Below are positions 1 to 27,800 of a stretch of 64,000 nt of DNA, one piece after another (position 1 is the stretch's first letter; every line of letters begins with the position of its first letter). Source of the DNA: Phaeosaccion multiseriatum (taxonomy: Eukaryota; Protista; Ochrophyta, other classes); contig OZ218961.1 in NCBI GenBank assembly GCA_965112735.1, positions 2,728,001 to 2,792,000 on the forward strand, in the 5' to 3' direction. The position numbers were made by a program, and so were the translations under genes. The notes under the pieces were generated by a model. The model ran no database searches and was not told the origin of the DNA. It was given only the letters and a program-made list of their open reading frames with translations.

Positions 1-509
1 CCCCGGCAAAGCTGAGGCCTTCATTTATTCCCCAGCTGGGAACATCGCGTGACCGTTTGCACAGCCCCTTTGCTGCATCATCATCGACGCGAATCTTTCA
101 TACGACCCGATGGTGGTGTCTTTCTCTACACCAACATTGTACCGCTCCTAAGTGCTGGCACAAGCCTCTCCAACCCCCCCCCCCCGGACTTCATAAAGTC
201 AAGCACAAATCGAAAACCGTCATAATTACGTAAGGATGGGGAACGTTCCTTTTTGGATCTTCCCTCTGCCTTCCCCTCCTCGTTTCCTTCCTCATATTCC
301 ACAGTCCACAGCAGCTACAAAGAAGAGACAGACCAGGAACGCTTATCTCATCACCGCCAAGAAGAAGTCCGTGCTTCTACGCCAGTCAGCCTTCAGGTTG
401 TCAAGAGAGCAGCAGGAGCAGCCAGAGGATCTTTTTCGTAGTGTGAGCGACGAGGAGCAGTCGAAGCCGCAGTGGAAGATGCAGCAGTAGCGCAGAAGCA
501 GCAGCCAGA

Positions 510-3383
510 ATGTCCCTTAGTGATGCCATTACTGCCGCAGAGGCCGTTGTGCTGCAGCTTAAGCAGGAGATTGAGGATGCCTTCCCGTCGAGGTGTGCCA
601 TCACGTCGAGCGACTGCACGGCCTCCCACAATAGCGCTTGCAGCAGCATCAGGAGTGGGGCCACCTGCGAGGTGGACGGGGTGCTCGACGAATGCGAAGA
701 GGAGTCTTGCGGGTGAGTAGGAAGTAGGCACCACGCCGACGAGTCTTCCCATCCAACTAATAAAGCCTGGCCTTCCTCTCTCTTATTTTCTTTACTTCTC
801 TCTCCTCGCTCCCGTGCTCAGATACCTTGTCGACAAAACGCTGAGTGTGGTGAGGATTCCCGCGGCTCTAGCTGATGGAGAGAGCGGAAACCCCACGGAG
901 GCAAGTCTTATTGAAGCTGCGTGCTTCTCGGGACTGATTGAAGGTGAGCGAGAGGCAGGAGGAGGGGCAGGGGCCTAAAACAGGAGTTGAGCACATCGTT
1001 AACATCACTAGTCTCTCTCCCTCTCCCCCACTTGACATTTGACAGACTCTCTCAAGTCTGCCTACGATGATAACAACGAGAGGTACGGACTTGAAGCAGC
1101 CTTCTTCGGGAGCTGGAGCGGTGTCTTTCGGTACTTTCCTGGCATCGCTGAGGAAGAATGCGGCAACTTCGACCCGCGCTTAAGGTAGGGGCCACGTACG
1201 TGCTTCCGGGCTCTCTTGTGTACCGTCGATGGACTCAGTATCGCCTCCCCCTGCTCCCGTCCCCATTCATCTCTGTACGCAGGCCCTGGTTCGTTGGAGC
1301 GAGCAGCGGGCCTAAGGATGTCGTCATCATCCTCGACACGTCGGGGAGCATGAGATTTGAGGGCAAGATGGAGCTCGCCATCGAAGCGGTGCAGACGGTG
1401 CTCACCGGGATGACCTTCGACCACTACGTCAACGTCATCTCTTTCGACTCCTCGGCAGAGGTGCTAAGCCTCAGTACGGATTCGCTACTGCAGGTACCGC
1501 GGTAGTAGTCTATCTGGACAGCTCCTCGCTCCTCTCGCTCCCTTTGCATTGTTTGTACTGGCTGACAAACTGCGCTCTGCTGCTGCCCACCAGGCCACGG
1601 AAGAAAACCTGCTTGCTCTCTCTGGGCTGGTCGGCCAATTGTCTCCCAACGGCGGGACGAACTTCTACGAAGGTGAGCGAGAAGCGCTCTCTGAAATCTG
1701 TCCAGCAGCTGCTTCTGTACTCACGTATGTCTCTCCTTGTCGTGCCATCCATCATGTGCTCCAACCCTCTGCGGCAGCCTTCGACTTGGCGTTCGATCTC
1801 ATCGAGAGGTGAGCCTAGCCAAGTCAAGCGAAGAGCATCACATACGCACTGGCTGCAGCAATCCCCGGATTGGGCACCTCACCTCACTTACGTCATCTCA
1901 CGTACGTACCTGTTCCGTTTGCTTCGCTTGCAATTGTTGGTTCTATATGCCTTCCACAGCTCCGTCGCTAGCGGCAACACGGCGGGATGCCACACTACGA
2001 TTCTTTTCCTCACTGATGGTAAGCAAGCTCAAGCCGAACAGCTACGGAAGCGTCGCTGTACTGCATAAGCAATAAGACGCATTAGAGACAGGACTCAGGG
2101 CCACCCACGCGGATGGCTGACTCTTCCTTCTCCGCTGCTCTCTGCTCTGGCTACTGACTCCAGGAGGAATCAGTGACGGACCGCTGGATCCGCTGGATCC
2201 GCTGGAGACGACAGGCCTCATCGAGACCAGAAACGCGGACATTGGTGCGGAAATCTTCACCTTCTCCTTCGGCGAGGACGCAGACCAAGACACCGCACAG
2301 ACGATAGCCTGTGAGACGGACGGGATCTACCGTCACGTCAGCAGCACCGACGATCTCACGGGGGCAATGGCGTCTTACTACCAGCTCTACGCTGTCGGGA
2401 GTGGAAACAGCAGCTCACAAAACCTCACAACCTGGACTGAGCCCTACATCTTCGACACGAGCGGCCAGTTGGGCACTACTTGCGCGGCGTCTGCCTACGA
2501 CCACAGCACCAGGTAGGCGGCTTACAAGCGAGATGTTGCTGTCCGCGTGGCTTGGAACCCGGAAAGCAGCCAGACCTGTTCCCTCGCTTAGTGTGGCCTC
2601 CATCCTCCCCCTCTCTCGATCTGCGTCTTGCCTCTCTCCTCTCCGCAGCCCCTCCACCTTCCTGGGGGTGGTGGCAGTGGACTTTACGCTATCGACCTTC
2701 ACAGACCTCGACGTGGAGTACAGCTTCGTCCTTGACCGGCTCGTCGCAGAGTCAAGCACGTGCCCGGTCTTCGAGCTGTCCGAGTGCGACAAGCAGGCCT
2801 ACAGAGCCTCCATCTCTGACGCCAGCGTGTGCGCGAGCCAGTGCGAGTCTACTCAGGTTGGTCTTCGCCGCTCAGGGAGCGAGTCAACGGGGTGGCGGGG
2901 CGAGCTCGTCGCTCCTGTCGTCCTCCCACAGCAGGAAGCAAGCGCTGATTGCCGTCCCTTCCCCTCTGCCCCACTCCTACCCCGCTGCAGGAGCTCACTC
3001 CCGAGGACTGCATGCCCGCCGGGGAGTACCCAAGAACGCTATGGACCAACACGGACGCCACTTACTGGTCGTACGTGGCGCGGGCGTGCTGCGATACCGG
3101 TTCCCACGCTGACGCCAGCGTGCAAGAGCCCACGTGCTCCAGGACGACATCCACACAGGTGTTTCCTCGCGTTTCTGTCGATTGGATTGTGGCGTCTTGC
3201 GTTGTTTTCGTCTTCATGTTATGTGATGCTTTTGTGGCATACGTGGGTGTTAAGTTGCTCGTGTTGTTGTATCGAGAGCGACAGAGGAACAAGCGTGATG
3301 CGAGAGTCCAGTCACATGCTACGGAAACCCAAACTCGTCCAGCAGCAGAAGCAACAGCAGAAGCAAGAGCAGGCGGCGTCTAG
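510..3383 (+). CDS. alpha2delta/CACHD1-like dCache+VWA single-pass membrane protein, copy 1 (about 597 aa, 10 exons)
   Basis: GT-AG exons 510-712, 822-943, 1046-1184, 1283-1493, 1594-1672, 1778-1808, 1960-2018, 2164-2512, 2649-2856 and 2991-3383 splice in phase (1794 nt). The protein has FFGSWSGVFRYFPG..FDPRLRPWFVGASSGPKDVVIILDTSGSM (the alpha2delta Cache-to-VWA junction), MIDAS DTSGS..GGTN..FLTDG, then WTEPY..FLGVVAVDF (second Cache half), a Cys-rich stalk and a C-terminal hydrophobic segment. Confidence 0.85.
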
Positions 3384-4289
3384 GAAGAAGAAAGATGATG
3401 GGAAGGAGAGCGTCGCTGATGCGCTGGTCGCCTTCTTGAGAGAGGTTGGCAAGGCCGGGATAGGGTAAGATGGCAACACGAGAGTGAATGCCCTCATGAA
3501 GTCGCTTATGAGAAGTGTACTAGTGTCAAAGGGTAATGGAAATCACGACTTTGTATGTTCTGTCACGCTTCAAGTTAGCCCAGGCTCTCCATCCAAAGCG
3601 AGACACTTCAAGGGTGCTCAGATTGCACTGGGGGGGGGGTTGCCAATGGGTGCCCACCCAACCTACATCTCATTATGCAGGGCCACAGAGCACGCACACC
3701 TGCCGCAGTACCTCTCACACACAAGAGTCAGGACACCACGACTCTGCCGTATAGCTGAAGCTTTCTCACTGAGCCATCTACGCCTCTCCTTTCGCTTAGC
3801 CTGCTTATTGCTGATGGGCCGGGACAACGCCTCTCTCGCTGCAGCCCCGCTCCCATTTTACGTAAGCAAGCGGGTGGATGAGTAGACTGCTTGCGACCTA
3901 GAGCACTCGGGGGTGGCTTGTGGAGCTGGCTGCTGCTGCCGGTCCACGCCCACTCGTTTGCAGCGCCTGGCCTGCTACTTCCCCGGCCCTTTCACTCAAT
4001 GAGGATGCTGTCGCGCGGCCAAGTCTTTCCATTAGGGCGCTGTCTCCTCTATTCCCTACCTATTGATCCTCTTTTACCCTTTCATCTGCCGTACTCCTGC
4101 CGTCTTCTGCATGCACTCCGTCGTTGTGGCTGCGTCTCTCTTCCTCAGCTCCACAGCGCTCGAGACATTGGAGCGGCTGAGTCCTCCGGCACGATCGAGC
4201 AGTAGTGACGAGATCAGACGTCAGGCAGCTCTCCCTCTCTCCTCGGCCTCCTCCCTGCTGATGCATGCATACCTCTTGCACATTCCGTC

Positions 4290-4570
4290 CATCCCTCCCT
4301 GCCCTGCTGCTTATCACACTCGCCAAACCGACAGCGCTTGAGCGCAGCCCACCAATGAAACACCCCTTGGTACATCTGCTTTTGGCACCCGGCCAGCTAC
4401 TCGGCAGCGCTTGACCTGAGCCCCGTGAGACACGCACACACCGCCTTGCTTTACCTTCTTCTGCATAGAGGAGAGGTAGGTACCGTCATGTCGCCAGCAA
4501 GGCCCTGTCGTTCTGCCCCCTTGTGTCACACGCTTCAACAGCGCGTCTCTCAGTACGGACAGGCATAATC
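4290..4570 (-). pseudogene. Decayed WRKY19-like zinc-finger repeat fragment (C-x4-C..GG.C..HG)
   Basis: Frame-shifted pieces GPCWRHDG and KKVKQGGVCVSHGAQVKRC resemble the CxxxGCxKxAxxGGxCxxHG repeats common in stramenopiles. There is no intact frame. Confidence 0.6.
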
Positions 4571-5354
4571 TGCACTCGCTTTTCTCCTCTGCTCTAGCCA
4601 CGGAAGCAGCAGCGCTCAAAAAGAGCCCCCCCCTCCCCCGCTGGGGTTGGAAGCTTCCTTCTTGCTGATCATCCCTCCCCCGCTGCGGTTGGGCTCCTGT
4701 GTGATCAGTGGTGCTATATGGGATTGTAGCGCCCTAGTGTGGCGACACGCATCTGATGGGGTGGGTGTTGGTGATTAGTAGAGACCCCTGGTGGGTTGAT
4801 CCTGGCCTGCAACTTGTAGCTTCAAGCGCCATGCTATGCATTGGGTATCTCGCGGGTGTGATGAGCAGGCGAGGGGGGGGATGGGCGGGATGGGCAGGAG
4901 GCATGCGCGTATCAGCAGGGAGGAGGCCGAGGAGAGGAGCAGCAGCACTCAAGAAGCCCCTCCCCCCCGCGACGGCCGCCGCGAGGAGGGGGAGGCGTGT
5001 ACGTAAGGGGGGACGCAAGAAGCGAGGAGCAAGGAAGCCGCGCACCACCTCTCGCCCTGCTTCCGCTGCTCGTGGACAGGAGGAAGGGCAAGAGGAGGGG
5101 CACACCCGCCGCCCCCGTGCAGCCAAAAGAGAAAGGCACTGTGCAGCTGCCCAAGAGATTCCGCAGGTACCATTGAGTGCATAGTGGGGCGGCGATGGGC
5201 TCACAGACGCTCGAGAGCGAGCGCGTGTGCGAAGGCAGGGCGGTGGCCATCCGTCAGGCGTGATATAATATCTATTACTACTATGTAATGCACAATCATA
5301 TATTCACACTGTAACCCCCTCTCTATTCTTCTCACATGCTTCTGTTCCTCCTTC

Positions 5355-5535
5355 TCCCCTTTTCCGCATCGCGACCCGAAAGCTGAAAGCTCCGGGCATT
5401 GTACTTCCTGTCGACTGTGCCCGTTCCCGTCGAGCCCCTTTCGGCGATCCACTGCCGAAGCTCTCTGTCGCCCGCCTCTGTCTCTGCCTCGCAGAGGCTC
5501 TGCCGTATCTATGCCCATCCTCGTCCATACCAAAG
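5355..5535 (-). pseudogene. Decayed inverted copy of the 3' end (last EF-hands) of the giant gene
   Basis: The reverse complement gcgacagagagcttcggcagtggatcgccga..ctcgacgggaacgg..gtcgacaggaag..tgcccggagctttcag matches 57840-57928. Confidence 0.85.
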
Positions 5536-6048
5536 GCAAAGCTGAGGCCTTCATTTATTCCTCAGCTGCTGGGAACATCGGTCAGTTTGTACAGCCCCTT
5601 TGCTGCATCATCATCGACGCAAATCTTTCATACGACCCGATGGTGGTGTCTTTCTCTACACCAACATTGTACTGCTCCTAATGTCACAAGCCTCTCCCAC
5701 CCCTCCCCCCCCCCCCCGGACTTCATGAAGTCAAGCACAAATCGAAAACCGTCATGATTACGTAAGGAATGGGGAACGTTCCTTTTTGGATCTTCCCTCT
5801 GCCCTTCCCCCTCCTCGTTTCCTTCCTCATCTTCCACAGTCCACCGCAGCTACAAAGAAGAGACAGACCAGGAACGCTTATCTCATCACCGCCAAGAAGA
5901 AGTCCGTGCTTCTACGCCGTCAGCCTTCAGGTTTGTCAAGAGAGCAGCAGGAGGAGCCAGAGGATGATCTTTTCGGTAGTGTGAGCGACGAGGAGTAGTA
6001 GAAGTCGCAGTGGAAGATGCAGCAGTAGCAGCAGAAGCAGCAGGCAGA

Positions 6049-8839
6049 ATGTCCCTTAGTGATGCCATCACTGCCGCAGAGGCCGTTGTGCTGCAGCTTA
6101 AGCAGGAGATTGAGGATGCCTTTCCGTCGAGGTGTGCCATCTCGTCGAGCGACTGCACGGCCTCCCACAATAGCGCTTGCAGCAGCATCAGGAGTGGGGC
6201 CACCTGCGAGGTGGACGGGGTGCTCGACGAGTGCGAAGAGGAGTCTTGCGGGTGAGTAGGAAGTAGGCACCACGCCGACGAGTCTTCCCATCCAACTAAA
6301 GCCTGGCCTTCCTCTCTCTTATTTTATTGAACTTCTCTCTCCTCGCTCCCGTGCTCAGATACCTTGTCGACAAAACGCTGAGTGTGGTGAGGATTCCCGC
6401 GGCTCTAGCTGATGGAGAGAGCGGAAACCCCACGGAGGCAAGTCTTATTGAAGCTGCGTGCTTCTCGGGACTGATTGAAGGTGAGCGAGAGGCAGGAGGA
6501 GGGGCAGGGGCCTAAAACAGGAGTTGAGCACACCTTTAATATCACTAGTCTCTCTCCCTGTCCCCTCCTGGACATTTGACAGACTCTCTCAAGTCTGCCT
6601 ACGATGACAACAACGAGAGGTACGGACTTGAAGCAGCCTTCTTCGGGAGCTGGAGCGGTGTCTTTCGGTACTTCCCTGGCATCGCTGAGGAAAAATGCGG
6701 CAGCTTCGACCCGCGCTTAAGGTAAGGGCCACGTACGTGCTGCGTGCCTCTCTTGTGTACCGTCGATGGACTCAGTATCACCCTCTCCTTTCTCACCCGT
6801 ACTCATCTCCGTACGTAGGCCCTGGTTCGTTGGAGCGAGCAGCGGGCCTAAGGATGTCGTCATCATCCTCGACACGTCGGGGAGCATGAGACTTGAGGGC
6901 AAGATGGAGCTCGCCATCGAAGCGGTGCAGACGGTGCTCACCGGGATGACCTTCGACCACTACGTCAACGTCATCTCTTTCGACACCTCGGCAGAGGTGC
7001 TCAGCCTCAGTACGAATTCGCTACTGCAGGTACTGGGGTTGTCTATCTGGACAGCTGTTCCCTTTTCATCGTTTGTACTGGCTGACAAACTGCGCTCTGC
7101 TGCTGCCCACCAGGCCACGGAAGAAAACCTGCTTGCTCTCTCTGGGCTGGTCGGCCAATTGTCTCCCAACGGCGGGACGAACTTCTACGAAGGTGAGCGA
7201 GAAGCGCTCTCTGAAATCTGTCCTGCAGTTGCTTCTGTACTCACGTATGTCTCTCCTTGTCTCCCGTCCATCATGTGACCCAACCCTCTGCGGCAGCCTT
7301 CGACTTGGCGTTCGATCTCATCGAGAGGTGAGCCTAGCCAAGTCAAGCGGTGAGCATCACATACGCACTGGCTGCAGCAATCCCCGGATTGGGCACCTCA
7401 CCTCACTTACGTCATCTCACGTACGTACCTGTTCCGTTTGCTTCGCTTACAATTGTTGGTTCTATGTGCCTTCCACAGCTCCGTCGCTAGCGGCAACACG
7501 GCGGGATGCCACACTACGATTCTTTTCCTCACTGATGGTAAGCAAGCTCAAGCCGAACAGCTACGGAAGCGTCGCTGTACTGCATAAGCAATAAGACGCA
7601 TTAGAGACAGGACTCAGGGCCACCCACGCGGATGGTTGACGCGTCCTTCTCCGCTGCTCTCTGCTCTGGCTACTGACTCCAGGAGGAATCAGTGTCGGAC
7701 CGCTGGATCCGCTGGAGACGACAGGCCTCATCGAGACCAGAAACGCGGACATTGGTGCGGAAATCTTCACCTTCTCCTTCGGCGAGGACGCAGAGCAAGA
7801 CACCACACAGACGATAGCCTGTGAGACGGACGGGATCTACCGTCACGTCAGCAGTACCGACGATCTCACGGGGGCAATGGCGTCGTACTACCAGCTCTAC
7901 GCCGTCGGGAGTGGAAACAGCAGCTCACAAAACCTCACAACCTGGACTGAGCCCTACATCTTCGACACGAGCGGCCAGTTGGGCACTACTTGCGCGGCGT
8001 CTGCCTACGACCACAGCACCAGGTAGGCGGCTTACAAGCGAGATGTTGCTGTCCGCGTGGCTTGGAACCCGGAAAGCAGCCAGACCTGTTCCCTCGCTTA
8101 GTGTGGCCTCCATCCTCCCCCTCTCTCGATCTGCGTCTTGCCTCTCTCCTCTCCGCAGCCCCTCCACCTTCCTGGGGGTGGTGGCAGTGGACTTTACGCT
8201 ATCGACCTTCACAGACCTCAACGTGGAGTACAACTTCGTCCTTGACCGGCTCGTCGCAGAGTCAAGCACGTGCCCGGTCTTCGAGCTGTCCGAGTGCAAC
8301 AAGCAGGCCTACAGAGCCTCCATCTCTGACGCCAGCGTGTGCGCGAGCCAGTGCGAGTCTACTCAGGTTGGTCTTCGCCGCTCAGGGAGCGAGTCAACGG
8401 GGTGGCGGGGCGAGCTCGTCGCTCCGGTCGTCCTCCCACTGCAGGAAGCAAGCGCTGATTGCCGTCCCTCCCCCTCTGCCCCACTCCTCCCCCGCTGCAG
8501 GAGCTCACTCCCAAGGACTGCATGCCCACCGGGGAGTACCCAAGAACGCTATGGACCAACACGGACGCCGCTAACTGGTTGTACGTGGTGCGGGCGTGCT
8601 GCGATACCGGTTCCCAAGCTGACGCCAGCGTGCAAGAGCCCACGTGCTTCAGGACGACATACACACGGGTGATTTACGAGCCTAGCGCTCTCGTTATGTT
8701 TTATTGCGTGGCGTTCTCCGGCATGTTTTGTGCTGCCGTATCATTTTGCGTTGGGTGCTGCCAAATCATGGAACAGCATCAACTTATGGGACTTGGTCGC
8801 AATCACCGCCGCTCTTTGTCGACAGAGTCTCGAGCGTGA
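6049..8839 (+). CDS. alpha2delta-like dCache+VWA membrane protein, copy 2
   Basis: Same exon/intron layout and splice sites as copy 1 with a near-identical ectodomain. The TM/tail differs (..EPSALVMFYCVAFSGMFCAAVSFCVGCC..STESRA*). Confidence 0.82.
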
Positions 8840-9509
8840 TGCGAGAGGCCAGTCACACGCTACGGAAACCTAAACTCGGCCAGCAGCAGAAGCAACAGCA
8901 GAAGCAAGAGCAGGCGGCGTCTAGGAAGAAGAAAGATGATGGGAAGGAGAGCGTCGCTGATGCGCTGGTCGCCTTCTTGAGAGAGATTGGCAAGGCCGGG
9001 ATAGGGCAAGATAGCAAAACGAGAGTGAATGCCCTCATGAAGTCGCTAATGAGTAGTGTACTGTCTTCTTCCTCCTCTGCCCAAGTCCAATGGAAACCAC
9101 GACCTTACATGTTCCTTCACGCTTGAAGTTAGCCTCCTCTTCTTATGCAGGCTCCCCATCTAAAACGAGACACTACAAGGGTGCTCAGATTGCACGCTGC
9201 TCCCCTTGGGGGCCGAGTGGCCTTGCTTCGCCAAAGGGTGCCCACCCAACCTACATCTCATAATGCAGGGCCACAGAGCACGCACACCTGCCGCAGTACC
9301 TCACAAGAGTCAGGACACCAGGACTCTGCCGTATAGCTGAAGCTTTCACGCCCACTCTTCCTCAGCTCCACAGCGCTCGAGACATTGGAGCGGCTGAGTC
9401 CTCCGGCACGATCGAGCAGTAGTGACGAGATCAGACGTCAGGCAGCTCTCCCTCTCTCCTCGGCCTCCTCCCTGCTGATGCATCCATGCCTCTTGCACAT
9501 TCTGTCCAT

Positions 9510-9800
9510 CCCTCCCTGCCCTGCTGCTTATCACACTCGCCAAACCGACAGCGCTTGAGCTCAGCCCACCAGTGAAACACACAGACGCCACCTCGGTACA
9601 TCTGCTTTTGGCACCCGGCCAGCTACTCGGCAGCGCTTGACCTGAGCCCCGTGAGACACGCACACACCGCCTTGCTTTACCTTCTTCTGCATAGAGGAGA
9701 GGTAGGTACCGTCATGTCGCCAGCAAGGCCCTTGTCGTTCTGCCCCCTTGTCACACACTTCAACAGCGCATCTCTCAGTACGGACAGGCATGATCTGCAC
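9510..9800 (-). pseudogene. Decayed WRKY19-like zinc-finger repeat fragment, copy 2
   Basis: ERCAVEVCDKGAERQGPCWRHDG..KKVKQGGVCVSHGAQVKRC in ORF 9561-9800. Confidence 0.62.
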
Positions 9801-10597
9801 TCGCTTTTCTCCTCTGCTCTAGCCACGGAAGCAGCAGCGCTCAAAAGGAGCCCCCCCCTCCCCCGCTGGGGTTGGAAGCTTCCTTCTTGCTGACCATCCC
9901 TCCCCCGCTGCGGTTGGGCTCCTGTGTGATCAGTGGTGTTACATGGGATTGTAGCACCCTAGTGTGGCGACACGCATCTGATGGGGTGGGTGTTGGTGAT
10001 TAGTAGAGACCCCTGGTGGATTGATCCTGGCCTGCAACTTGTAGCTTCAAGCGCCATGCTATGCATTGGGTATCTCGCGGGTGTGATGAGCAGGCGAGGG
10101 GGGGGGATGGACGGGATGTGCAAGAGGCATGCGCGTATCAGCAGAGAGGAGGCCGAGGAGACGAGCAGCAGCGCTCAAGAAGCCCCTGTGCCCCCCGCGA
10201 CGGCCGCCGCGAGGAGGGGGAGGCGTGTACGTAAGGGGGGACGCAAGAAGCGAGGAGCAAGGAAGCCGCACACCACCTCTCGCCCTGCTTCCGCTGCTCG
10301 TGGACAGCAGGAAGGGCAAGAGGAGGGGCACACCCGCCGCCCCCGTGCAGCCAAAAGAGGAAGGCACTCCGTGTGGGGGACGAGGTGCAGCTGCCCAAGA
10401 GATTCCGCAGGTACCATTGAGTGCATAGTGGGGCGGCGATGGGCTCACAGACGCTCGAGAGCGAGCGCGTGTGCGAAGGCAGGGCGGTGGCCATCCGTCA
10501 GGCGTGATGTAATATCTACTACTACTATGTAATGCACAATCATATATTCACACTGCAACCTCTCTATTTTTCTCACATGCTTCTGTTCCTCCTTCTC

Positions 10598-10812
10598 CCC
10601 TTTTTCCGCATCGCGACCCGAAAGCTGAAAGCTCCGGGCATAGTACTTCCTGTCGACTGTGCCCGTTCCCGTCGAGCCCCTTTCGGCGATCCACTGCCGA
10701 AGCTCTCTGTCGCCCGCCTCTGTCTCTGCCTCGCAGAGGCTCTGCCGTATCTATGCCCATCCTCGTCCATACCAAAGGCCATGAGTACTAGAGAGCCGCG
10801 TGCTCCTCATGA
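10598..10812 (-). pseudogene. Longer decayed inverted copy of the giant gene 3' end
   Basis: As above, and it extends to gaggagcacgcggct, identical to 57728-57742. Confidence 0.85.
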
Positions 10813-10813
10813 G

Positions 10814-12119
10814 TCAGTCTTGATCAGTCACCCTCGCCCCTCCCCTCCCCCCCCTCCCGCTGCTCCTCCTCCCCCCTCCTCCTCCTCCCGTGCCTCGGGG
10901 CCGTGCCTGGCCGGCGTTTGCCTGCTGCTCCTGCTGCTCCACTTGCTCCAGCGGCGGTCGGGATGGACGTTGCCGACGACTGTGCGAGCCTCTGCTGCCG
11001 CACTCTCCGTCGAACACCTGCCACGGCCGGACGAAGAGAAGGAGAGTCAGTCAGGGCAGAGCCGCTTGAGGGGACGCCACAATAGGTGGTGTGAAAAGGA
11101 TCGACGAAAAGGATTGACAAGGCGGAGCGGTCATCTACTCGTGAATGAGCAACCACCTCATCTCAAATAGGGGGTAGGTTGGGCTTCGATAGGAAACAGC
11201 CAAAACACGTCACTTACATAGTCCATCCCCGCCCCGCAGCGGTTGGCATTCACCAAGCGACACGTGTTGGAGTACGTGCTGTATGAGGTGCCGTCGAATG
11301 CACAGACGGGGGTGTAGTCGGCTGGACAGGCGGCAAGAGGGTCGCAAGGCCGCCGCCCTCCCTCCTCTTCCGCTGGAGTCTCAGCTGGACCGGCGCCATT
11401 AGCCGCCAGACACGAGCCCCCAGTTATCTCCCGCTGCAGGGCTTCGTGCTGCTCTGGGCTCAGCCTGTCCCACGGTGTCGGACTGTTGCACAAAGTCGTC
11501 ACGTACATGGTAGCGTCGGACTCTGGCTCTTCGTTGTCGGCCGTTCCGAGGGGAAAGAGGTATCTGCGTGGGCGAGTGAGGGTCGAGAGGGCGCAGCAAC
11601 AGCAGTAGAAGCAAGCTGAGCAAGGAGAGCCAGACAGGGGCGGGGCGACCAGCGACCCCCGGAGTGAAGGGGGCTGCCGTGTGATGCACGGATGAAGAGT
11701 AAAGCTTCACGCACCTCTCGCCCACGGTGAGACGGACGCCACAGGCGGCGCTGCTGGCCGGCGTTGAGATGCGCACGAACCTTCGCGGAGCCTCAAGGCC
11801 TCTGAAGTAACTCCCGACTCCAACGCGATAGATCACTGCATTGCGTCCCTGGGAGTCCACAGGCGGCCCCTCTAGGTTCAGCACCTCTCCGCTCAGCAGG
11901 GTGTCTTGTTGATCCCGCACGAGAGAGGGAAGGGGAAGGGGAAATTATATTAGAAGGAAGTGCTACTTAAAGCGCTACCTTTCTCTCTCTGTCTCTCTCC
12001 CACTCACCTGCAGATCTAATCTGGTGGCAGAAGGAGCGACGGGCACAACGGCAGCTGCAAGCCTCACGGACAAGGCTACTGATACACACCAGAAGCAGGA
12101 AGGGGCGAGGGAGGAACAT
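10814..12119 (-). CDS. Secreted TIMP/NTR-like + Kazal domain protein (283 aa, 4 exons)
   Basis: Exons 12008-12119, 11715-11904, 11218-11563 and 10814-11017 splice in phase (852 nt). Translation: MFLPRPFLLLVCISSLVREACS|CRCARRSFC..ADTLLSGEV..IYRV..FRG..ISTPASSAACGVRLTVGERYL..TTLCNSPTPWDRLSPEQ..GSC (N-TIMP pattern, 6 Cys). This is followed by CDPLAACPADYTPVCAFDG..TYSNTC..NRC..YVFDGEC (6-Cys Kazal). Confidence 0.85.
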
Positions 12120-12346
12120 TTTTCGCGAGCCGAGCCTTACCCCCCTTTTTACGACTTTAAGTTCCCTCTATCCTTCCTCTTGCTCTTCTTATACGTCTAT
12201 ACTGTCACTCCGCAAGCCCTCTCCCGTCAGTGCCTCCCGTCAGTGCCTCCCGTCCCGTCTGATGCACATCTGGTACCATCGGAAAAGGGCTCTCGTCCCC
12301 TCTCTCTCCACCTCATTAGGACTCAACCAAAGCAAAGCTTGTCACT
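12120..12346. promoter_or_regulatory. Putative bidirectional promoter between TIMP-Kazal and UBL-RING
   Basis: A 227-bp gap between divergent ATGs. It contains a tandem 13-mer (ctcccgtcagtgc x2) at about 12221-12252. Confidence 0.35.
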
Positions 12347-13849
12347 ATGGCAACATTGGTGACGGGAGCGCGCAGCCATGAGATCATCGACGTGACTCAC
12401 AGCGACGATGCTCAACGCTGCATGTTTCTGACGCTGAACGAAAAGGACACCCTTGGCGACGTCGAGTGCGCTCTCCAGAAGCAGCTGGTAAGGGCCGACG
12501 ATGCCCTCTTCCACGTTGACAAGCTGGTGCAGGGCGGCAGTGCGCTGGCGAGGGAGTCGGGGGAATAGATTGGACTGTTTGGCATTGTGGGAGCGTCCAT
12601 CCTCTTACCTGGAACGCCCCTGTCCCTGTGAAGATTATGATCAGCGAGGGCGAGACGCGCTCCTTCGCTCAAGAACTTGTGGTGAGAGCGTGGCCGTGGA
12701 CTCTTTGGACCCCGAAGGCCTGGCTTGGGTGGCGAGGGAGGGATACACAGATGGCGTGCTCAAGTGTCTGGCCTCGTCTGTGGTCCGTTCTCACGTCGCC
12801 ACCGGCCGCCCTCCCACTCCTACTCCATGACCTGCCAATGCTCATCAAGGCTTCCTCCGTGCAGGAACCCGATCACATCTTGGTCAGGTTGATCGAGGGA
12901 AACACCGTGACCCTTACTATCAGGCCCACGGACGCCATCGCCTCTGTGGTGGAGCGCCTCACCAGCAGCAAGGGAGTGCCCTCTACCTCGGAGCAGTACC
13001 TTCGCTTCGCAGCCAAGCCGCTTGCGACCGCAGCTCACTGTCGCTGACTACCACATCACGGCGAACAGCACCCTGTACATCTCGCTGAAGCTCAAGGGTG
13101 GTCGTGAAGCTCCTCGCGTGATGTTCGCAGACGTCTCCGACAGCTCGGCCGCGACTATTCCCCACTGGGGCTCCTCCTCGCCAGCTTTGAGGAAAGCGCG
13201 TAAAGGTCTATGCCTGGAGAGTGTGTGCACTAACTTAAGCTACTAGGCCTGCTACAAGCACTTCATTCCGAAGTGGGGCTTCAATGACGTCGACTTCATC
13301 CCGCAGCAGAGCCCCGGCCAAGCACACGGCCGGGGACCCGCGTGCCCCATGTGCGCCGAGCCCGTCACACCTGCCATGAGCGGTTTCAACAACTGCGTGT
13401 GGCGCGCATGTCCGGCATCAAGGCCGACGAGGGGGGCGACGCCGTCACCCTCCACCCAGTGGAAGCAAGTGGGGCACGAGTACCTCGCCTTCAAAGCGAG
13501 CTCGAGCGTGGCCTGGAGCAGACTCCTACTGCAAGTAAGGAGGCCCACCGTCTGCCCCGAGAGCTTGCCGCTGATGCGCGTGGTCGCATCAAGCTCGGAG
13601 GTGGTCCCTCTTCCGGAAGATCCCATGCTCTGGAGCGGCTGCTGTTCTATCTGCCTGGAGCCCTGCAGCAGCTCCAGCGCCACGAAGGCCACGAAGATGA
13701 GCTGCGGTCACCGCTTGCACCGCACCTGCTACCTCAGGATGAAGAGCAACATGTCCTCCACCACTTGCCCCCTGTGCCGCGCGGAAGGGGCGAGCACGAG
13801 CACGACAACTTTGAGTCTGCGGTATGCCGGACGCACGCACGCACGCAGG

Positions 13850-14472: not shown

Positions 14473-15207
14473 TCCCAGTGACCGTGGGCGCGTGCGTGGT
14501 GCCGCCCAGCCAGTGGGTAGCACCCCTGTAGGCCTGCACTCCTCTAGTCCTCACTTCCAAACCCATGCAATACATACTACGCTAGGCCAGCAATAGCGAA
14601 CAGATCCCTTCTCTGAAACGTCACTCTCGAGTACTGTCACGATTGGGGAGAAAGTATCTCGAGCGGGAGACGGATCACCGCGGAGGCCTCCCCGGCAAAG
14701 CTGAGGCCTTCATTTATTCCCCAGCTGGGAACATCGCGTGACCGTTTGTTGCACAGCCCCTTTGCTGCATCATCATCGACGCGAATCTTTCATACGACCC
14801 GATGGTGGTGTCTTTCTCTACACCAACATTGTACCGCTCCTAAGTGCTGGCACAAGCCTCTCCCACCCCCCCCCCCCCCGGACTCCATAAAGTCAAGCAC
14901 AAATCGAAAACCGTCATGATTACGTAAGGATGGGGAACGTTCCTTTTTGGATCTTCCGTCTGCCCTTCCCCCTCCTCGTTTCCTTCCTCATATTCCACAG
15001 TCCACAGCAGCTACAAAGAAGAGACAGACCAGGAACGCTTATCTCATCACCGCCAAGAAGAACTCCGTGCTTCTACGCCAGTCAGCCTTCAGGTTAGTCA
15101 AGAGAGCAGCAGGAGCAGCCAGAGGATCTTTTTCGGCAGTGTGAGCGACGAGGAGTAGTAGAAGCCGCAGTGGAAGAACAGCAGTAGCAGCAGAAGCAGC
15201 AGCCAGA

Positions 15208-18044
15208 ATGTCCCTTAGTGATGCTATCACTGCCGCAGAGGCCGTTGTGCTGCAGCTTAAGCAGGAAATTGAGAATGCCTTCCCGTCGAGGTGTGCCATC
15301 ACGTCGAGCGACTGCACGGCCTCCCACAATAGCGCTTGCAGCAGCATCAGGAGTGGGGCCACCTGCGAGGTGGACGGGGTGCTCGACGAATGCGAAGAGG
15401 AGTCTTGCGGGTGAGTAGGAAGTAGGCACCACGCCGACGAGCCTTCCCATCCAACTAATAAAGCCTGGCCTTCCTCTCTCTTATTTTATTGAACTTCTCT
15501 CTCCTCGCTCCCGTGCTCAGATACCTTGTCGACAAAACGCTGAGTGTGGTGAGGATTCCCGCGGCTCTAGCTGATGGAGAGAGCGGAAACCCCACGGAGG
15601 CAAGTCTTATTGAAGCTGCGTGCTTCTCGGGACTGATTGAAGGTGAGCGAGAGGCAGGAGGAGGGGTAGAGGGGCCTAAAACAGGAGTTGAGCACATCGT
15701 TAATATCACTAGTCTCTCTCCCTCTCCCCCACTTGACATTTGACAGACTCTCTCAAGTCTGCCTACGATGATAACAACGAGAGGTACGGACTTGAAGCAG
15801 CCTTCTTCGGGAGCTGGAGCGGTGTCTTTCGGTACTTTCCTGGCATCGCTGAGGAAGAATGCGGCAACTTCGACCCGCGCTTAAGGTAGGGGCCACGTAC
15901 GTGCTTCCGGCCTCTCTTGTGTACCGTCGATGGACTCAGTATCGGCCCCCCCTGCTCCCGTCCCCATTCATCTCTGTACGCAGGCCCTGGTTCGTTGGAG
16001 CGAGCAGCGGGCCTAAGGATGTCGTCATCATCCTCGACACGTCGGGGAGCATGAGATTTGAGGGCAAGATGGAGCTCGCCATCGAAGCGGTGCAGACGGT
16101 GCTCACCGGGATGACCTTCGACCACTACGTCAACGTCATCTCTTTCGACTCCTCGGCAGAGGTGCTCAGCCTCAGTACGGATTCGCTACTGCAGGTACCG
16201 CGGTAGTAGTCTATCTGGACAGCTCCTCACTCCTCTCGCTCCCTTTGCATTGTTTGTACTGGCTGACAAACTGCGCTCTGCTGCTGCCCACCAGGCCACG
16301 GAAGAAAACCTGCTTGCTCTCTCTGGGCTGGTCGGCCAATTGTCTCCCAACGGCGGGACGAACTTCTACGAAGGTGAGCGAGAAGAGCTCTCTGAAATCT
16401 GTCCAGCAGTTGCTTCTGTACTCACGTATGTGTCTCCTTGTCGTGCCATCCATCATGTGCTCCAACCCTCTGCGGCAGCCTTCGACTTGGCGTTCGATCT
16501 CATCGAGAGGTGAGCCTAGCCAAGTCAAGCGAAGAGCATCACATACGCACTGGCTGCAGCAATCCCCGGATTGGGCACCTCACCTCACTTACGTCACCTC
16601 ACGTACGTACATGTTCCGTTTGCTTCGCTTGCAATTGTTGGTTCTATATGCCTTCCACAGCTCCGTCGCTAGCGGCAACACGGCGGGATGCCACACTACG
16701 ATTCTTTTCCTCACTGATGGTAAGCAAGCTCAAGCCGAACAGCTACGGAAGCGTGCTGTACTGCACAAGCAATAAGATGCATTAGAGTTGGGACTCAGGG
16801 CCACCCACACAGATGACTGACGCTTCCTTCTCCTCTGCTCTCTGCTCTGGCTACTGACTCCAGGAGAGATCAGTGACGGACCGCTGGATCCGCTGGAGAC
16901 GACAGGCCTCATCGAGACCAGAAACGCGGACATTGGTGCGGAAATCTTCACCTTCTCCTTCGGCGAGGACGCAGACCAAGACACCGCACAGACGATAGCC
17001 TGTGAGACGGACGGGATCTACCGTCACGTCAGCAGCACCGACGATCTCACGGGGGCAATGGCGTCGTACTACCAGCTCTACGCTGTCGGGAGTGGAAACA
17101 GCAGCTCACAAAACCTCACAACCTGGACAGAGCCCTACATCTTCGACACGAGCGGCCAGTTGGGCACTACTTGCGCGGCGTCTGCCTACGACCACAGCAC
17201 CAGGTAGGCGGCTTACAAGCGAGATGTTGCTGTCCGCGTGGCTTGGAACCCGGAAAGCAGCCAGACCTGTTCCCTCGCTTAGTGTGGCCTCCATCCTGCC
17301 CCTCTCTCGCTCTGCGTCTTGCCTCTCTCCTCTCCGCAGCCCCTCCACCTTCCTGGGGGTGGTGGCAGTGGACTTTAAGCTGTCGACCTTCACAGACCTC
17401 AACGTGGAGTACAACTTCGTCCTTGACCGGCTCGTCGCAGAGTCAAGCACGTGCCCAGTCTTCGAGCTGTCCGAGTGCAACAAGCAGGCCTACAGAGCCT
17501 CCATCTCTGACGCCAGCGTGTGCGCGAGCCAGTGCGAGTCTACTCAGGTTGGTCTTCGCCGCTCAGGGAGCGAGTCAACGGGGTGGCGGGGCGAGCTCGT
17601 CGCTCCTGTCGTCCTCCCACTGCAGGAAGCAAGCGCTGATTGCCGCCCGTCCCCCTCTGCCCCCCTCCTACCCCGCTGCAGGAGCTCACTCCCAAGGACT
17701 GCATGCCCACCGGGGAGTACCCAAGAACGCTATGGACCAACACGGACGCCGCTAACTGGTCGTACGTGGCGCGGGCGTGCTGTGATACCGGTTCCCACGC
17801 TGACGCCAGCGTGCAAGAGCCTACGTGCTTCGTGACGACCCCCCCGAATTACGATCCTACCTATATCATCATCATTACGTATTTTTGCGTTTTTGCCCTC
17901 ATCGCATTTTTCTGTTATTTTTTTTTCCTCTTGGATCGCCGCCGCTCTTTGTCGACAGCAGAGTCGGATATCAGAGTCGCAAGCGTGATGCGAGAGGCCA
18001 GTCACACGCTACGGAAACCCAAACTCGGCCAGCAGCAGAAGTAG
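15208..18044 (+). CDS. alpha2delta-like dCache+VWA membrane protein, copy 3
   Basis: Same layout as copies 1 and 2. The TM/tail is PPNYDPTYIIIITYFCVFALIAFFCYFFFLLDRRR..GQQQK*. Confidence 0.82.
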
Positions 18045-18679
18045 CAGCAGAAGCAACAGCAGAAGCAAGAGCAGGCGGCGTCTAGCTAGGAAGAAGAAAG
18101 ATGATGGGAAGGAGAGCGTCGCTGATGCGCTGGTCGCCTTCTTGAGAGAGATTGGCAAGGCCGGGATAGGGCAAGATAGCAAAACGAGAGTGAATGCCCT
18201 CATGAAGTCGCTAATGAGTAGTGTACTGTCTTCTTCCTCCTCTGCCCAAGTCCAATGGAAACCACGACCTTACACGTTCTTTCACGCTTGAAATTAGCCT
18301 CCTCTTCTTATGCAGGCTCCCCATCTAAAACGAGCCACTACAAGGGTGCTCAGATTGCACGCTGCTCCCCTTGGGGGCCGAGTGGCCTTGCTTCGCCAAA
18401 GGGTGCCCACCCAACCTACATCTCAGAATGCAGGGCCACAGAGAGCACGCACACCTGCCGCAGTACCTCACACACAAGAGTCAGGACACCGGAAAGCTGA
18501 AGCTTTCACGCCCACTCTTCCTCAGCTCCACAGCGCTCGGGACATTGGAGCGGCTGAGTCCTCCGGCACGATCGAGCAGTAGTGACGAGATCAGACGTCA
18601 GGCAACTCTCCCTCTCTCCTCGGCCTCCTCCCTGCTGCTGATGCATCCATGCCTCTTGCACATCCCGTCCATGCCTCCC

Positions 18680-18943
18680 TGCCCTGCTGCTTATCACGCT
18701 CGCCAAACCGACAGCGCTTGAGCGCAGCCCACCAGTGAAACACACAGACGCCGGCACCCGGCCAGCTGCTCGGCAGCGCTTGACCTGAGCCCCGTGAGGC
18801 ACGCAAACACCGCCTTGCTTTACCTTCTTCTGCATAGAGGAGAGGCAGGTACCGTCATGTCGCCAGCAAGGCCCTTGTCGTTCTGCCCCCATGTCACACG
18901 CTTCAACAGCGCATCTCTCAGTACGGACAGGCATGATCTGCAC
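18680..18943 (-). pseudogene. Decayed WRKY19-like zinc-finger repeat fragment, copy 3
   Basis: ERCAVEACDMGAERQGPCWRHDG..GGVCVPHGAQVKRC and GVCVFHWWAALKRCRFGE in offset frames. Confidence 0.6.
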
Positions 18944-19398
18944 TCGCTTTTCTCCTCTGCTCTAGCCACGGAAGCAGCAGCGCTCAAGAAGCCCCTCCCC
19001 CCCGCGACGGCCGCCGCGAGGAGGGGGAGGCGTGTACGTAAGGGGGGACGCAAGAAGAGAGGAGCATGGAAGCCGCGCACCACCTCTCGCCCTGCTTCCG
19101 CTGCTCGTGGACAGGAGGAAGGGGAAGAGGAGGGGCACACCCGCCGCCCCCGTGTGTGTGTGTGCTGCGAAGAAGAGGAAGGCACTCTGTGTGGGGGACG
19201 AGGTGCAGCTGCCCAAGAGATTCCGCAGGTACCATTGAGTGCATAGTGGCGCAGTCAGAGAGGCTGGAGCGACAATGGGTGGGGCATGGTATTACTAATA
19301 AAACAAAGGAGTTTAAGGGGGAAATAAAACGTGGCTATACAATGCGACATGATCTTGAAAACATTCGCTGGAACAACCGCCCAAAATAAGAACAAGCA

Positions 19399-24880: not shown

Positions 24881-27800
24881 ATGGCGAATCCCTTCTCAGT
24901 CGTAGGTAAGTGAAGCACGCCATCATCGGATCCGACAGTAGAGCAGTAGCAGCAGCAACAGTACCAACAACAGTAGTGGCAACAGCAGCGCCCAACTCCC
25001 CCCTCCTCTTCGTATTCCCCCCCTCCGCGATCTTCCTGGGGCAGAGGACCCATAGAAAATGAGCAAAAAGGGGGGAGCAGGATCGTATAAAAGCTCTTTA
25101 GAACATGAGCAAAAGGGGGGGAGCAGGATAGCATACAAGCTCTTTAGTACCGAAGAGGCATCTCTGAGCTTTCCTTGGTGGTTGTACAGCGCCTCCTCCT
25201 CCTCCTCCTGCTGCTGCTGCTGCTGCTCCTGCTGCTGCTGCTCCTGCTGCTGCTCAACTATCCCTTCTCCCTCATGTCCTTCAACTTGGCCCCGCTATAG
25301 TCGTCGATTGCCGCAACCTGGAGCCAGTGGGAGAGAGCACCTACGTGGAGGTTCAGCTCATCGTCCCTGGAGAGAGACACCGCGCTCAGGGATGCAGCGC
25401 TGTGGACGAGGCCGTCAATCCCGTGTGGGAGGAGGAGCACCTAGCCTTGTGAGTCAACAGCCCCAGCTAACCTCCTTCATGTTGGGCATAAGTATGGCAG
25501 CGCGACCTCCATGCGTCCTTTCCCTGACAAACCGCAATACTTTGACTTGCTGCTTCTGTCTTGAACTTCATCCCCACCATGTGCTTTGGCAGCGATACCG
25601 ACTCCACAGGGCGCGTCGGAGATGTGGAGATGCGAGTATTCCAAACCGATGGACGGGGAGCCACGCCACAGCTGGTGGGAGAGTGTATACAACCCTTAAG
25701 CAAGCTCATTGGGAACCTGCACCGCAAGACCTTTCGGTTGCAGGCAGCGGGAGGAGGAAGCAGCAAGGGCGTCATCCGAATTAGCACGGCCTACGGTGAC
25801 GAGGACGAGCGAGGCCGGAGAGAAACAGGGGACCTAGATGATCTCGAGGAAGGAATGACGTGTGAGGTCAACTACAAGGGAAGTGGTCAGTACTACCCCG
25901 GACAGATCACTCGGCTGCACAGCGATGGAACGTGCGACATCAACTACGACGACGGAGAGAAGGAGACGCGCGTGGAGCCCTCCTCCATCAGGGGGGCACA
26001 GAACGCTCCTCCCTCGCCGCGCAGTCGGAATCAAAGTCCTACCATGAGAGCGAGTCGAGGTAGAGGGGATGCTCATGAAGCGAATAAGGGCCGCAACAAG
26101 CTGGAGGAGGGCATGAAGGTGGAGGCCAACTATAGAGGCAAAGGGCGGTACTACCCTGGGCGTATCGCTCGCGTGCACCGAGACGGCACTTGCGACATTG
26201 ATTATGACGATGGCGATAAGGCGCTGAGGATGGAGCCTGATATGGTGAGGGTCAAGGGGGGAGGAGCGAGTCGAGGAGCGAGTCGAGGAAGGGGAGCCGC
26301 TCAGGACAGCGAGGATGAGGGCAGCAACAAGCTGGAGGAGGGCATGAAGGTGGAGGCCAACTATAGAGGCAAAGGGCGGTACTACCCTGGGCGTATCGCT
26401 CGTGTACACCGAGACGGCACTTGCGACATTGATTACGACGATGGCGAGAAGGAGAGAATGCTTGAGCCGAGCCTCGTCAGAGTAAAGGGCAGAGGGAGAT
26501 CGGGAAGCCCTGTCAGAGCCAGAGCCGGTGCGGCATCGACAGAGAAGCTGGCCGTGGGTGATAGGGTGGAGGGCAACTACAAAGGCAAGGGGCGGTGGTA
26601 CAAGGGCAAGATCTCTCGCGCCTGGCTCAATGGATCATACGATATCGAGTACGATGACGGTGAGAAGGAGACCAGGGTAGCCAGGGAGCTGATCAGAGAG
26701 CGCGATGGAGGAGGCGGTAGGAGAGGAGGAGCAGCTCAGGAGAGCGAGGATGAGGGCCGCACAAGGCTGGAGGAGGGCATGAAGGTGGAGGCCAACTATA
26801 GAGGCAAAGGGCGGTACTACCCTGGGCATATCGCTCGCGTACACAGAGACGGTACCTGCGACATTGACTATGACGACGGCGATAAGGCGATGAGGATGGA
26901 GCCTGATATGGTGAGGGTCAAGGGGGGAGGAGCGAGTCGAGGAGCGAGTCGAGGAAGGGGAGCCGCTCAGGACAGCGAGGATGAGGGCAGCAACAAGCTG
27001 GCGGAGGGCATGAAAGTGGAGGCCAACTATAGAGGCAAAGGGCGGTACTACCCTGGGCGTATCGCTCGTGTACACCGAGACGGCACCTGCGACATTGACT
27101 ACGACGATGGCGATAAGGCCATGAGGATGGAGCCTGATATGGTGAGGGTCAAGGCGGGAGGAGCGAGTCGAGGAAGGGGGGCCGCTCAGGACAGCGAGGA
27201 TGAGGGCAGCAACAAGCTGGAGGAGGGTATGAAGGTGGAGGCCAACTACAGAGGCAAAGGGCGGTACTACCCTGGGCGTATCGCTCGTGTACACCGAGAC
27301 GGCACTTGCGACATTGATTACGACGATGGCGAGAAGGAGAGAATGCTTGAGCCGAGCCTCGTCAGAGTAAAGGGCAGAGGGAGATCGGGAAGCCCTGTCA
27401 GAGCCAGAGCCGGTGCGGCATCGACAGAGAAGCTGGCTGTGGGTGATAGGGTGGAGGGCAACTACAAAGGCAAGGGGCGGTGGTACAAGGGCAAGATCTC
27501 TCGCGCCTGGCTCAATGGATCATACGATATCGAGTACGATGACGGTGAGAAGGAGACCAGGGTAGCCAGGGAGCTGATCAGAGAGCGCGATGGAGGAGGC
27601 GGTAGGAGAGGAGGAGCAGCTCAGGACAGCGAGGATGAGGGAAGGGGCAAGCTGGAGGAGGGCATGAAGGTGGAGGCCAACTACAGAGGCAAAGGGCGGT
27701 ACTATCCTGGGCGTATCGCTCGTGTACACCGAGACGGCACCTGCGACATTGACTATGACGATGGCGATAAGGCGATGAGGATGGAGCCTGATATGGTGAG

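Follow-up and report, generated by a model that had tools for sequence, protein, structure and literature searches.

Does an alga encode, in one secreted chain, an inhibitor aimed at two classes of protease? The question is raised by a locus at 12119..10814 on the minus strand of the window (the whole 64,000-nucleotide stretch of DNA that was analysed), where an earlier sequence-only reading had seen a four-exon gene that would join a TIMP-like domain to a Kazal domain. TIMPs chelate the zinc of metzincins through their N-terminal cysteine, so that what follows the leader of this protein, and not only its domain content, bears on the question. Here, we confirm the observation of a four-exon TIMP-like plus Kazal gene, of which the Kazal part and the gene model are sound. 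We lean towards the view that the locus is a real nuclear gene with introns, from a GC-rich eukaryote, whose 283-aa secretory product would consist of a leader, a TIMP/NTR-like N-domain of about 130 aa that starts with Cys-x-Cys, a flexible linker, a single canonical Kazal domain and a low-complexity tail.

Gene structure and leader

The gene is present in the open reading frames only as separate pieces, as had been claimed, and the pieces do join. Four minus-strand fragments (11967..12119, 11399..11920, 11158..11508 and 10814..11017) are connected by three GT..AG introns of compatible phases (1, 2 and 0) into a single frame, with the exons summing to 852 nt, or 283 codons and a TGA. The introns start with GTGAGT, GTGCGT and GTAAGT, and each ends in an AG behind a pyrimidine tract. 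The GC content at third codon positions of exons 2 and 3 is 0.71-0.73, as against an overall GC of 0.49 and 0.54 in introns 1 and 3.

Exon 1 (12008..12119, 112 nt) begins with an ATG at 12119 in an AAAATG context, encodes a hydrophobic leader (residues 1-20 or 1-22) followed by CSCRC....FC (Cys21, 23, 25 and 31), and ends at a phase-1 donor, CAG/GTGAGT. Intron 1 (11905..12007, 103 nt, GT..AG, 49% GC, phase 1) has as its acceptor the first AG past the pyrimidine tract. Exon 2 (11715..11904, 190 nt) encodes the central part of the TIMP-like domain and terminates in STPASSAACGVRLTVGE, which holds Cys92, at the donor AG/GTGCGT. Within intron 2 (11564..11714, 151 nt, GT..AG, phase 2) lies an alternative AG whose use gives a 52-nt frame shift. 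Exon 3 (11218..11563, 346 nt), bounded by the acceptor CACGCAG and the donor TAT/GTAAGT, encodes the final third of the TIMP-like domain (with TLC..PWD.LS, Cys126 and Cys152), an Ala/Glu/Pro/Gly-rich linker of about 20 aa, and the first five cysteines of the Kazal domain. Intron 3 (11018..11217, 200 nt, GTAAGT..CAG, phase 0) divides the Kazal domain between its fifth and sixth cysteines. Exon 4 (10814..11017, 204 nt, acceptor GTGGCAG) carries the sixth and then a tail of 61 aa (10817..10999), which is low in complexity, rich in Gly, Arg and Gln and without a family match in the Pfam scan, before the TGA at 10816..10814. All the motifs quoted in the sequence-only reading are found in the joined protein: the leader with CSCRC, TPASSAACGVRLTVGE/R/YL, TLCNSPTPWDRLS and CPADYTPVC.

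Two plus-strand frames lie on or near the gene. An ATG-initiated ORF of 212 aa (10532-11170), antisense to exon 4 and intron 3, is Pro/Leu-rich and of low complexity, and probably owes its existence to the GC-rich repeat of that exon. A 73-aa ORF at 12347-12568, divergently oriented and about 230 bases upstream of the start codon of the gene, gave no Pfam match; it may be the first exon of a neighbouring gene, with a bidirectional promoter region in common.

The signal-peptide-like leader (12054..12119, minus strand), delimited by reading the sequence against the established -3/-1 rule for signal-peptide cleavage, is MFLPRPFLLLVCISSLVREA and is followed directly by CSCRC....FC. This is the arrangement that had been described, namely a signal-like peptide and then a mature chain starting Cys-Arg-Cys or Cys-Ser-Cys. 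Cleavage after Ser22 (12054) would give the Cys-Arg-Cys end, has Ala/Ser at -3/-1 and leaves exactly six cysteines in the N-domain, and by the rule this site appears acceptable. Cleavage after Ala20 (12060) would give Cys-Ser-Cys and places Arg at -3, for which the rule would disfavour it. At either candidate site, an N-terminal cysteine would be exposed, as the TIMP mechanism requires, and the protein is probably secreted.

The Kazal domain

Membership of the Kazal family is the most solid of the domain assignments made from the sequence. The domain spans 11000..11346 on the minus strand (residues 174-222, with intron 3 inside), and exon 3 alone scores above the Pfam gathering scores of two models: 26.0 bits against a cut-off of 21 for Kazal_1 and 23.8 bits against 22.8 for Kazal_2. 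The same exon matches dozens of solved Kazal inhibitors in a PDB search, and its CPADYTPVC aligns with the CPKDYRPVC reactive loop of the ovomucoid third domain (1OVO). From this alignment, the loop reads Cys180-Pro-Ala182-Asp-Tyr-Thr-Pro-Val-Cys188, and therefore P1 is Ala182 (codon 11322..11320), P2 is Pro and P1'-P3' are Asp-Tyr-Thr. The six cysteines (Cys174, 180, 188, 202, 210 and 222) occur in Kazal order, five of them in exon 3 and Cys222 in exon 4, such that the complete set is dependent on the exon 3/4 splice. This splice is supported by the domain itself, since exon 4 supplies the sixth cysteine in a fitting context: the VFDGEC at its start resembles the ..YDGEC ends of Kazal units among the database matches. 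The earlier claim of a full six-cysteine Kazal domain with Ala at P1 is thus upheld, as is its placement where the C-terminal domain of a TIMP normally lies, the linker and the Kazal domain both coming after the N-domain.

In common with the ovomucoid third domain and PSTI/SPINK1 (PF00050/PF07648, MEROPS I1), the domain has the six-cysteine pattern and the Cys-P2-P1-P1' loop. It differs from these inhibitors in its Cys4-Cys5 spacing of 7 residues and not 2, a spacing of the follistatin/agrin type, in the Ala at P1, and in being a single unit behind a TIMP-like domain. A Kazal P1 of Ala suggests elastase- or subtilisin-like targets and not trypsin-like ones, and on this general rule of P1 specificity the Kazal head would be directed at proteases of the elastase or subtilisin type. 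Known Kazal proteins of stramenopiles include EPI1 and EPI10 of oomycetes.

The N-terminal domain and its likeness to TIMPs

What, then, is the domain that precedes the Kazal unit? The putative TIMP/NTR-like domain covers residues 21-152 (11410..12059, minus strand, with introns 1 and 2 inside). When the gene was scanned exon by exon against 24736 Pfam models, TIMP was the only non-Kazal match; it came from exon 3 alone, with scores of 12.5-14.5 bits that lie below the TIMP gathering cut-off of 23.1 bits. The 55-aa N-terminal part of exon 3 gave TIMP as its sole Pfam match (14.5 bits, E 0.032, profile positions 97-128 of 183), and in a search of 177635 PDB sequences its sole matches were four TIMP-2 chains (E 0.14-0.5). 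In the HMMER alignment, TIMP-2 residues 90-122 align to ...TLCNSPTPWDRLSPEQ... (TLC..PWD.LS), and Cys126 falls on TIMP-2 Cys101. At the end of exon 2, TPASSAACGVRLTVG agrees at 10 of 15 positions with the TIMP-2 stretch quoted in the sequence-only reading. In a pairwise test, each of these two matches to TIMP-2 was reached by none of 20000 shuffles, although at the scale of whole databases they are marginal (Pfam E 0.032, PDB E 0.14). The two are also colinear and similarly spaced: about 30 residues separate them here, and 25 in TIMP-2. Exon 2 additionally gave, in a language-model atlas search, a weak lead (score 0.83) to a bacterial cluster of which 19% of members carry PF00965. The corresponding search with exon 3 returned nothing usable, and an AlphaFold2 model of exon 3 alone was likewise unusable, with a mean pLDDT of 45.5.

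The cysteines provide a further line of evidence. By index arithmetic on the 283-aa model, the cysteines before the Kazal domain are at 21, 23, 25, 31, 92, 126 and 152. Numbered from Cys23, they are at 1, 3, 9, 70, 104 and 130; numbered from Cys21, at 1, 3, 5, 11, 72, 106 and 132. In the N-domain of TIMP-1 the cysteines are at 1, 3, 13, 70, 99 and 124, and in that of TIMP-2 at 1, 3, 13, 72, 101 and 126, of which the position of Cys101 is borne out by the PDB alignment. The spacing agrees with the statement that six cysteines are placed as in the N-domain of TIMPs; the numbering from Cys21 has one further cysteine, at position 5.

Taken as a whole, this makes a TIMP/NTR assignment of the N-domain plausible, and the likeness to TIMPs suggestive but not proven. 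We judge it likely, at a good deal better than an even chance, that the N-domain is a true domain of the TIMP/NTR type. The earlier claim of a TIMP-like N-domain is favoured by the return of a single family from both Pfam and the PDB, by the colinear matches and by the cysteine spacing; against it, every score lies below the curated threshold. The proposed HMMER comparison with Pfam, made here exon by exon, is accordingly divided, with the Kazal models above their gathering scores and TIMP at 14.5 bits below its own.

Could the protein instead be a plain secreted inhibitor with a single Kazal domain, behind a lineage-specific cysteine-rich domain whose TIMP motifs are due to chance or convergence? 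Every TIMP match being sub-threshold is as such an account would have it; exons 1 and 2, when searched singly, had no match in Pfam or the PDB; and when the two colinear local matches are combined in an approximate sum statistic, E is about 1 over a database the size of the PDB. The account also gains from the lack of homologues connecting the N-domain with TIMPs. Searches with exons 2 and 3 in word-index protein databases (in which the exons were embedded in longer frames and proteins of 95-318 aa were eligible) gave no match, and neither metagenome contigs (searched with exons 2 and 3) nor viral contigs nor prokaryotic genomes yielded relatives of the N-domain. An exact look-up of the 116-aa ORF returned no record. 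An exhaustive HMMER search of 1.84 billion representative proteins with exon 3 produced 188 matches at E<=1e-3, all of them via Kazal units, and among the best 150 of these 188 there was no TIMP-like partner, as judged by phmmer with exon 1, exon 2 and the N-terminal part of exon 3 and by inspection of the N-termini. At the level of sequence, the N-domain is therefore lineage-specific. Against chance or convergence, however, TIMP is the one family that all those models and structures returned, with a cysteine aligned on Cys101, and three independent features are colinear with it: the Cys-x-Cys behind the leader, a cysteine at mature position 70 or 72, and the SSA.CGV ridge motif. Hence we regard the plain Kazal account as unlikely, while recognising it as the foremost of the alternatives.

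To return to the TIMP-type reading, the resemblances to the N-domain of animal TIMP-2 (1BR9, 2TMP; PF00965, MEROPS I35) are a leader followed by Cys-x-Cys, six cysteines in near-identical spacing, SSA.CGV before the cysteine that pairs with Cys1, and TLC..PWD.LS around the cysteine that pairs with Cys3. The differences from TIMPs are the sub-threshold profile scores, a shorter segment between Cys3 and the third cysteine, a second residue that is Arg or else an extra cysteine, and a host that is not an animal. The two candidate cleavage sites diverge on this point: a Cys-Arg-Cys mature end would put Arg at residue 2, as against the usual Ser or Thr of TIMPs, and a Cys-Ser-Cys end would leave a seventh, unpaired cysteine in the N-domain. 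Compared with full-length vertebrate TIMPs, the protein is without the C-terminal six-cysteine TIMP domain and has the Kazal domain in its place.

Some of these differences bear on a second alternative, in which the N-domain is indeed of the NTR/OB fold yet serves to bind or anchor, as in PCOLCE, sFRP and WFIKKN, and the Kazal head alone inhibits. For most NTR modules outside the TIMPs, inhibition of metzincins is not among their functions (PMC2871463). From Cys3 to the third cysteine the N-terminal segment has 5-7 residues here, against 9 in TIMPs, residue 2 is possibly Arg and the cleavage site is uncertain, all of which would suit a binding module. The position of the domain would not: it stands at the very N-terminus, behind a leader and with Cys-x-Cys, an arrangement that internal and C-terminal NTR modules do not have, and its best-conserved stretches (SSA.CGV) are those that form the inhibitory ridge in TIMPs. 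A pure binding role thus seems to us improbable, and more so than the plain Kazal account.

Coding constraint, genomic setting and the proposed two-headed inhibitor

The locus is contained in four public runs, from one sample in one study. Contigs of all four traverse the introns unbroken, and therefore the runs are DNA and uninformative on splicing. They do supply a second version of the sequence, with 99.4% identity over 10804..13000 (runs X1, X2 and X4; run X3 contains both versions), for which allelic variation, a different strain or a very recent duplication could account. The second version has 13 substitutions in 10804-13000, of which 9 fall in exons 2 and 3 of the gene. In the predicted frame, seven of these 9 are synonymous third-position changes and the other two are conservative (V187I and F190Y); the binomial probability of at least 7 synonymous changes in 9 is about 0.003, assuming that about 28% of random changes are synonymous. 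With most of the exon changes silent, the reading frame is shown to be under constraint, that is, under purifying selection. This counts against the last and by far the least probable alternative, that the locus is a pseudogene without a functional product, either silent or in decay, that arose by duplication within a multi-copy family, for which the heavily duplicated surroundings and the long low-complexity tail lacking a family match might speak, but which is contradicted further by a frame intact over four exons with canonical splice sites and by the retention of all 13 domain cysteines.

The distribution of the substitutions is an observation in its own right. The remaining 4 are at 12346-12889, inside or beside plus-strand ORFs, and there are none in the 454 nt of the three introns; that all 9 changes in the gene should lie in exons has a probability of about 0.02. 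Such a restriction could be due to gene conversion between paralogues or to a mixed assembly.

As for the surroundings, there are three copies, 95-97% identical, of a segment of about 3.15 kb (1-3164, 5535-8675 and 14690-17839), and further blocks are common to the copies (4138-5537 corresponding to 9355-10779, and 8823-9863 to 17972-19003). One repeat block ends at 10779, which is 35 bases past the TGA of the TIMP-like/Kazal gene; that gene lies outside the repeat, and no second copy of it is found within the 64-kb window. Further along, 25561-33270 on the plus strand is an open frame of 2570 aa with about 25 repeats of the Tudor/Agenet type (Tudor_5, E 4.5e-168), made of internally repeated DNA at 80-95% identity. 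Also on the plus strand, 36584-58012 holds three open frames (1836, 2362 and 2800 aa) with EF-hand pairs, one of them with a PUB domain and another with WD40 and a partial protein-kinase match; these long EF-hand frames confirm the eukaryotic context. Contamination by animal DNA, or a recent transfer from an animal, was considered and ruled out by the introns and GC content of local type, the long eukaryotic contig and the independent DNA runs.

In light of these findings, how might the protein work? In the reading that we prefer, signal-peptide cleavage would free the N-terminal cysteine of the Cys-x-Cys. Along with a disulfide-linked ridge formed by the Cys-x-Cys and SSAAC-G-V, this cysteine would insert into a metzincin's active site and there chelate the zinc in the manner of a TIMP. 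The Kazal loop, with Ala at P1, would bind serine proteases of the elastase or subtilisin type as a substrate does. Together, the two heads would make an extracellular inhibitor for defence, or for regulating the cell surface or matrix. Dual inhibition of metallo- and serine proteases is what we infer from the sequence of the two domains. A broader proposal, which we hold tentatively and at rather less than an even chance, is that the gene belongs to a multi-copy family, specific to its lineage, in a stramenopile alga, and that each member is a secreted inhibitor with one head of TIMP type and one Kazal head, probably directed in defence against bacterial, parasite or grazer proteases or at the alga's own surface metzincins.

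A TIMP-like domain outside animals has precedents, and the statement that TIMPs are known mainly from animals needs qualifying to this extent. Outside Metazoa, proteins with the TIMP/netrin domain as their one domain are reported from Sphaeroforma arctica, Ectocarpus siliculosus and various bacteria (PMC3516229). In the red alga Pyropia yezoensis, a secreted PF00965 protein with a signal peptide, py03343.t1, is induced during oomycete infection and is proposed to block pathogen metalloproteases in defence (PMC6928737), and in Listeria a TIMP-like lipoprotein paired with a metzincin is described (PMC8235301). The reports from Ectocarpus and Pyropia thus provide a precedent for TIMP-like proteins in algae. 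The protein described here shares with all of these a domain of TIMP/NTR type in a non-metazoan; compared by description only, they are single-domain or reported without a Kazal domain. The only described combination of a Kazal-type unit with an NTR module that we found in one secreted multi-inhibitor chain is that of vertebrate WFIKKN/GASP, which has WAP, follistatin/Kazal, Ig, Kunitz and C-terminal NTR domains (PMC3516229). The NTR module of WFIKKN, being C-terminal, has no free N-terminal cysteine, whereas the NTR-like domain here is N-terminal; WAP, Ig and Kunitz domains had no Pfam match in any exon (E<=10). In the literature searched, we found no paper joining TIMP, Kazal and algae or stramenopiles in the sense of a two-headed inhibitor; to all appearances, no fusion of an N-terminal TIMP-like head with a Kazal head has been described so far.

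Should the N-domain prove not to be TIMP-like, what is left is a secreted Kazal protein of the ordinary sort, joined to a cysteine-rich orphan domain. TIMPs have been treated as regulators of the animal matrix, and the reports of them outside animals are few and purely computational. If the TIMP-type reading is true, the TIMP mechanism would be in use outside Metazoa and recombined there with other inhibitor modules, giving a compact, naturally occurring inhibitor of two classes of protease. In turn, this would be a pointer to extracellular protease warfare, or to remodelling of the cell surface, in algae.
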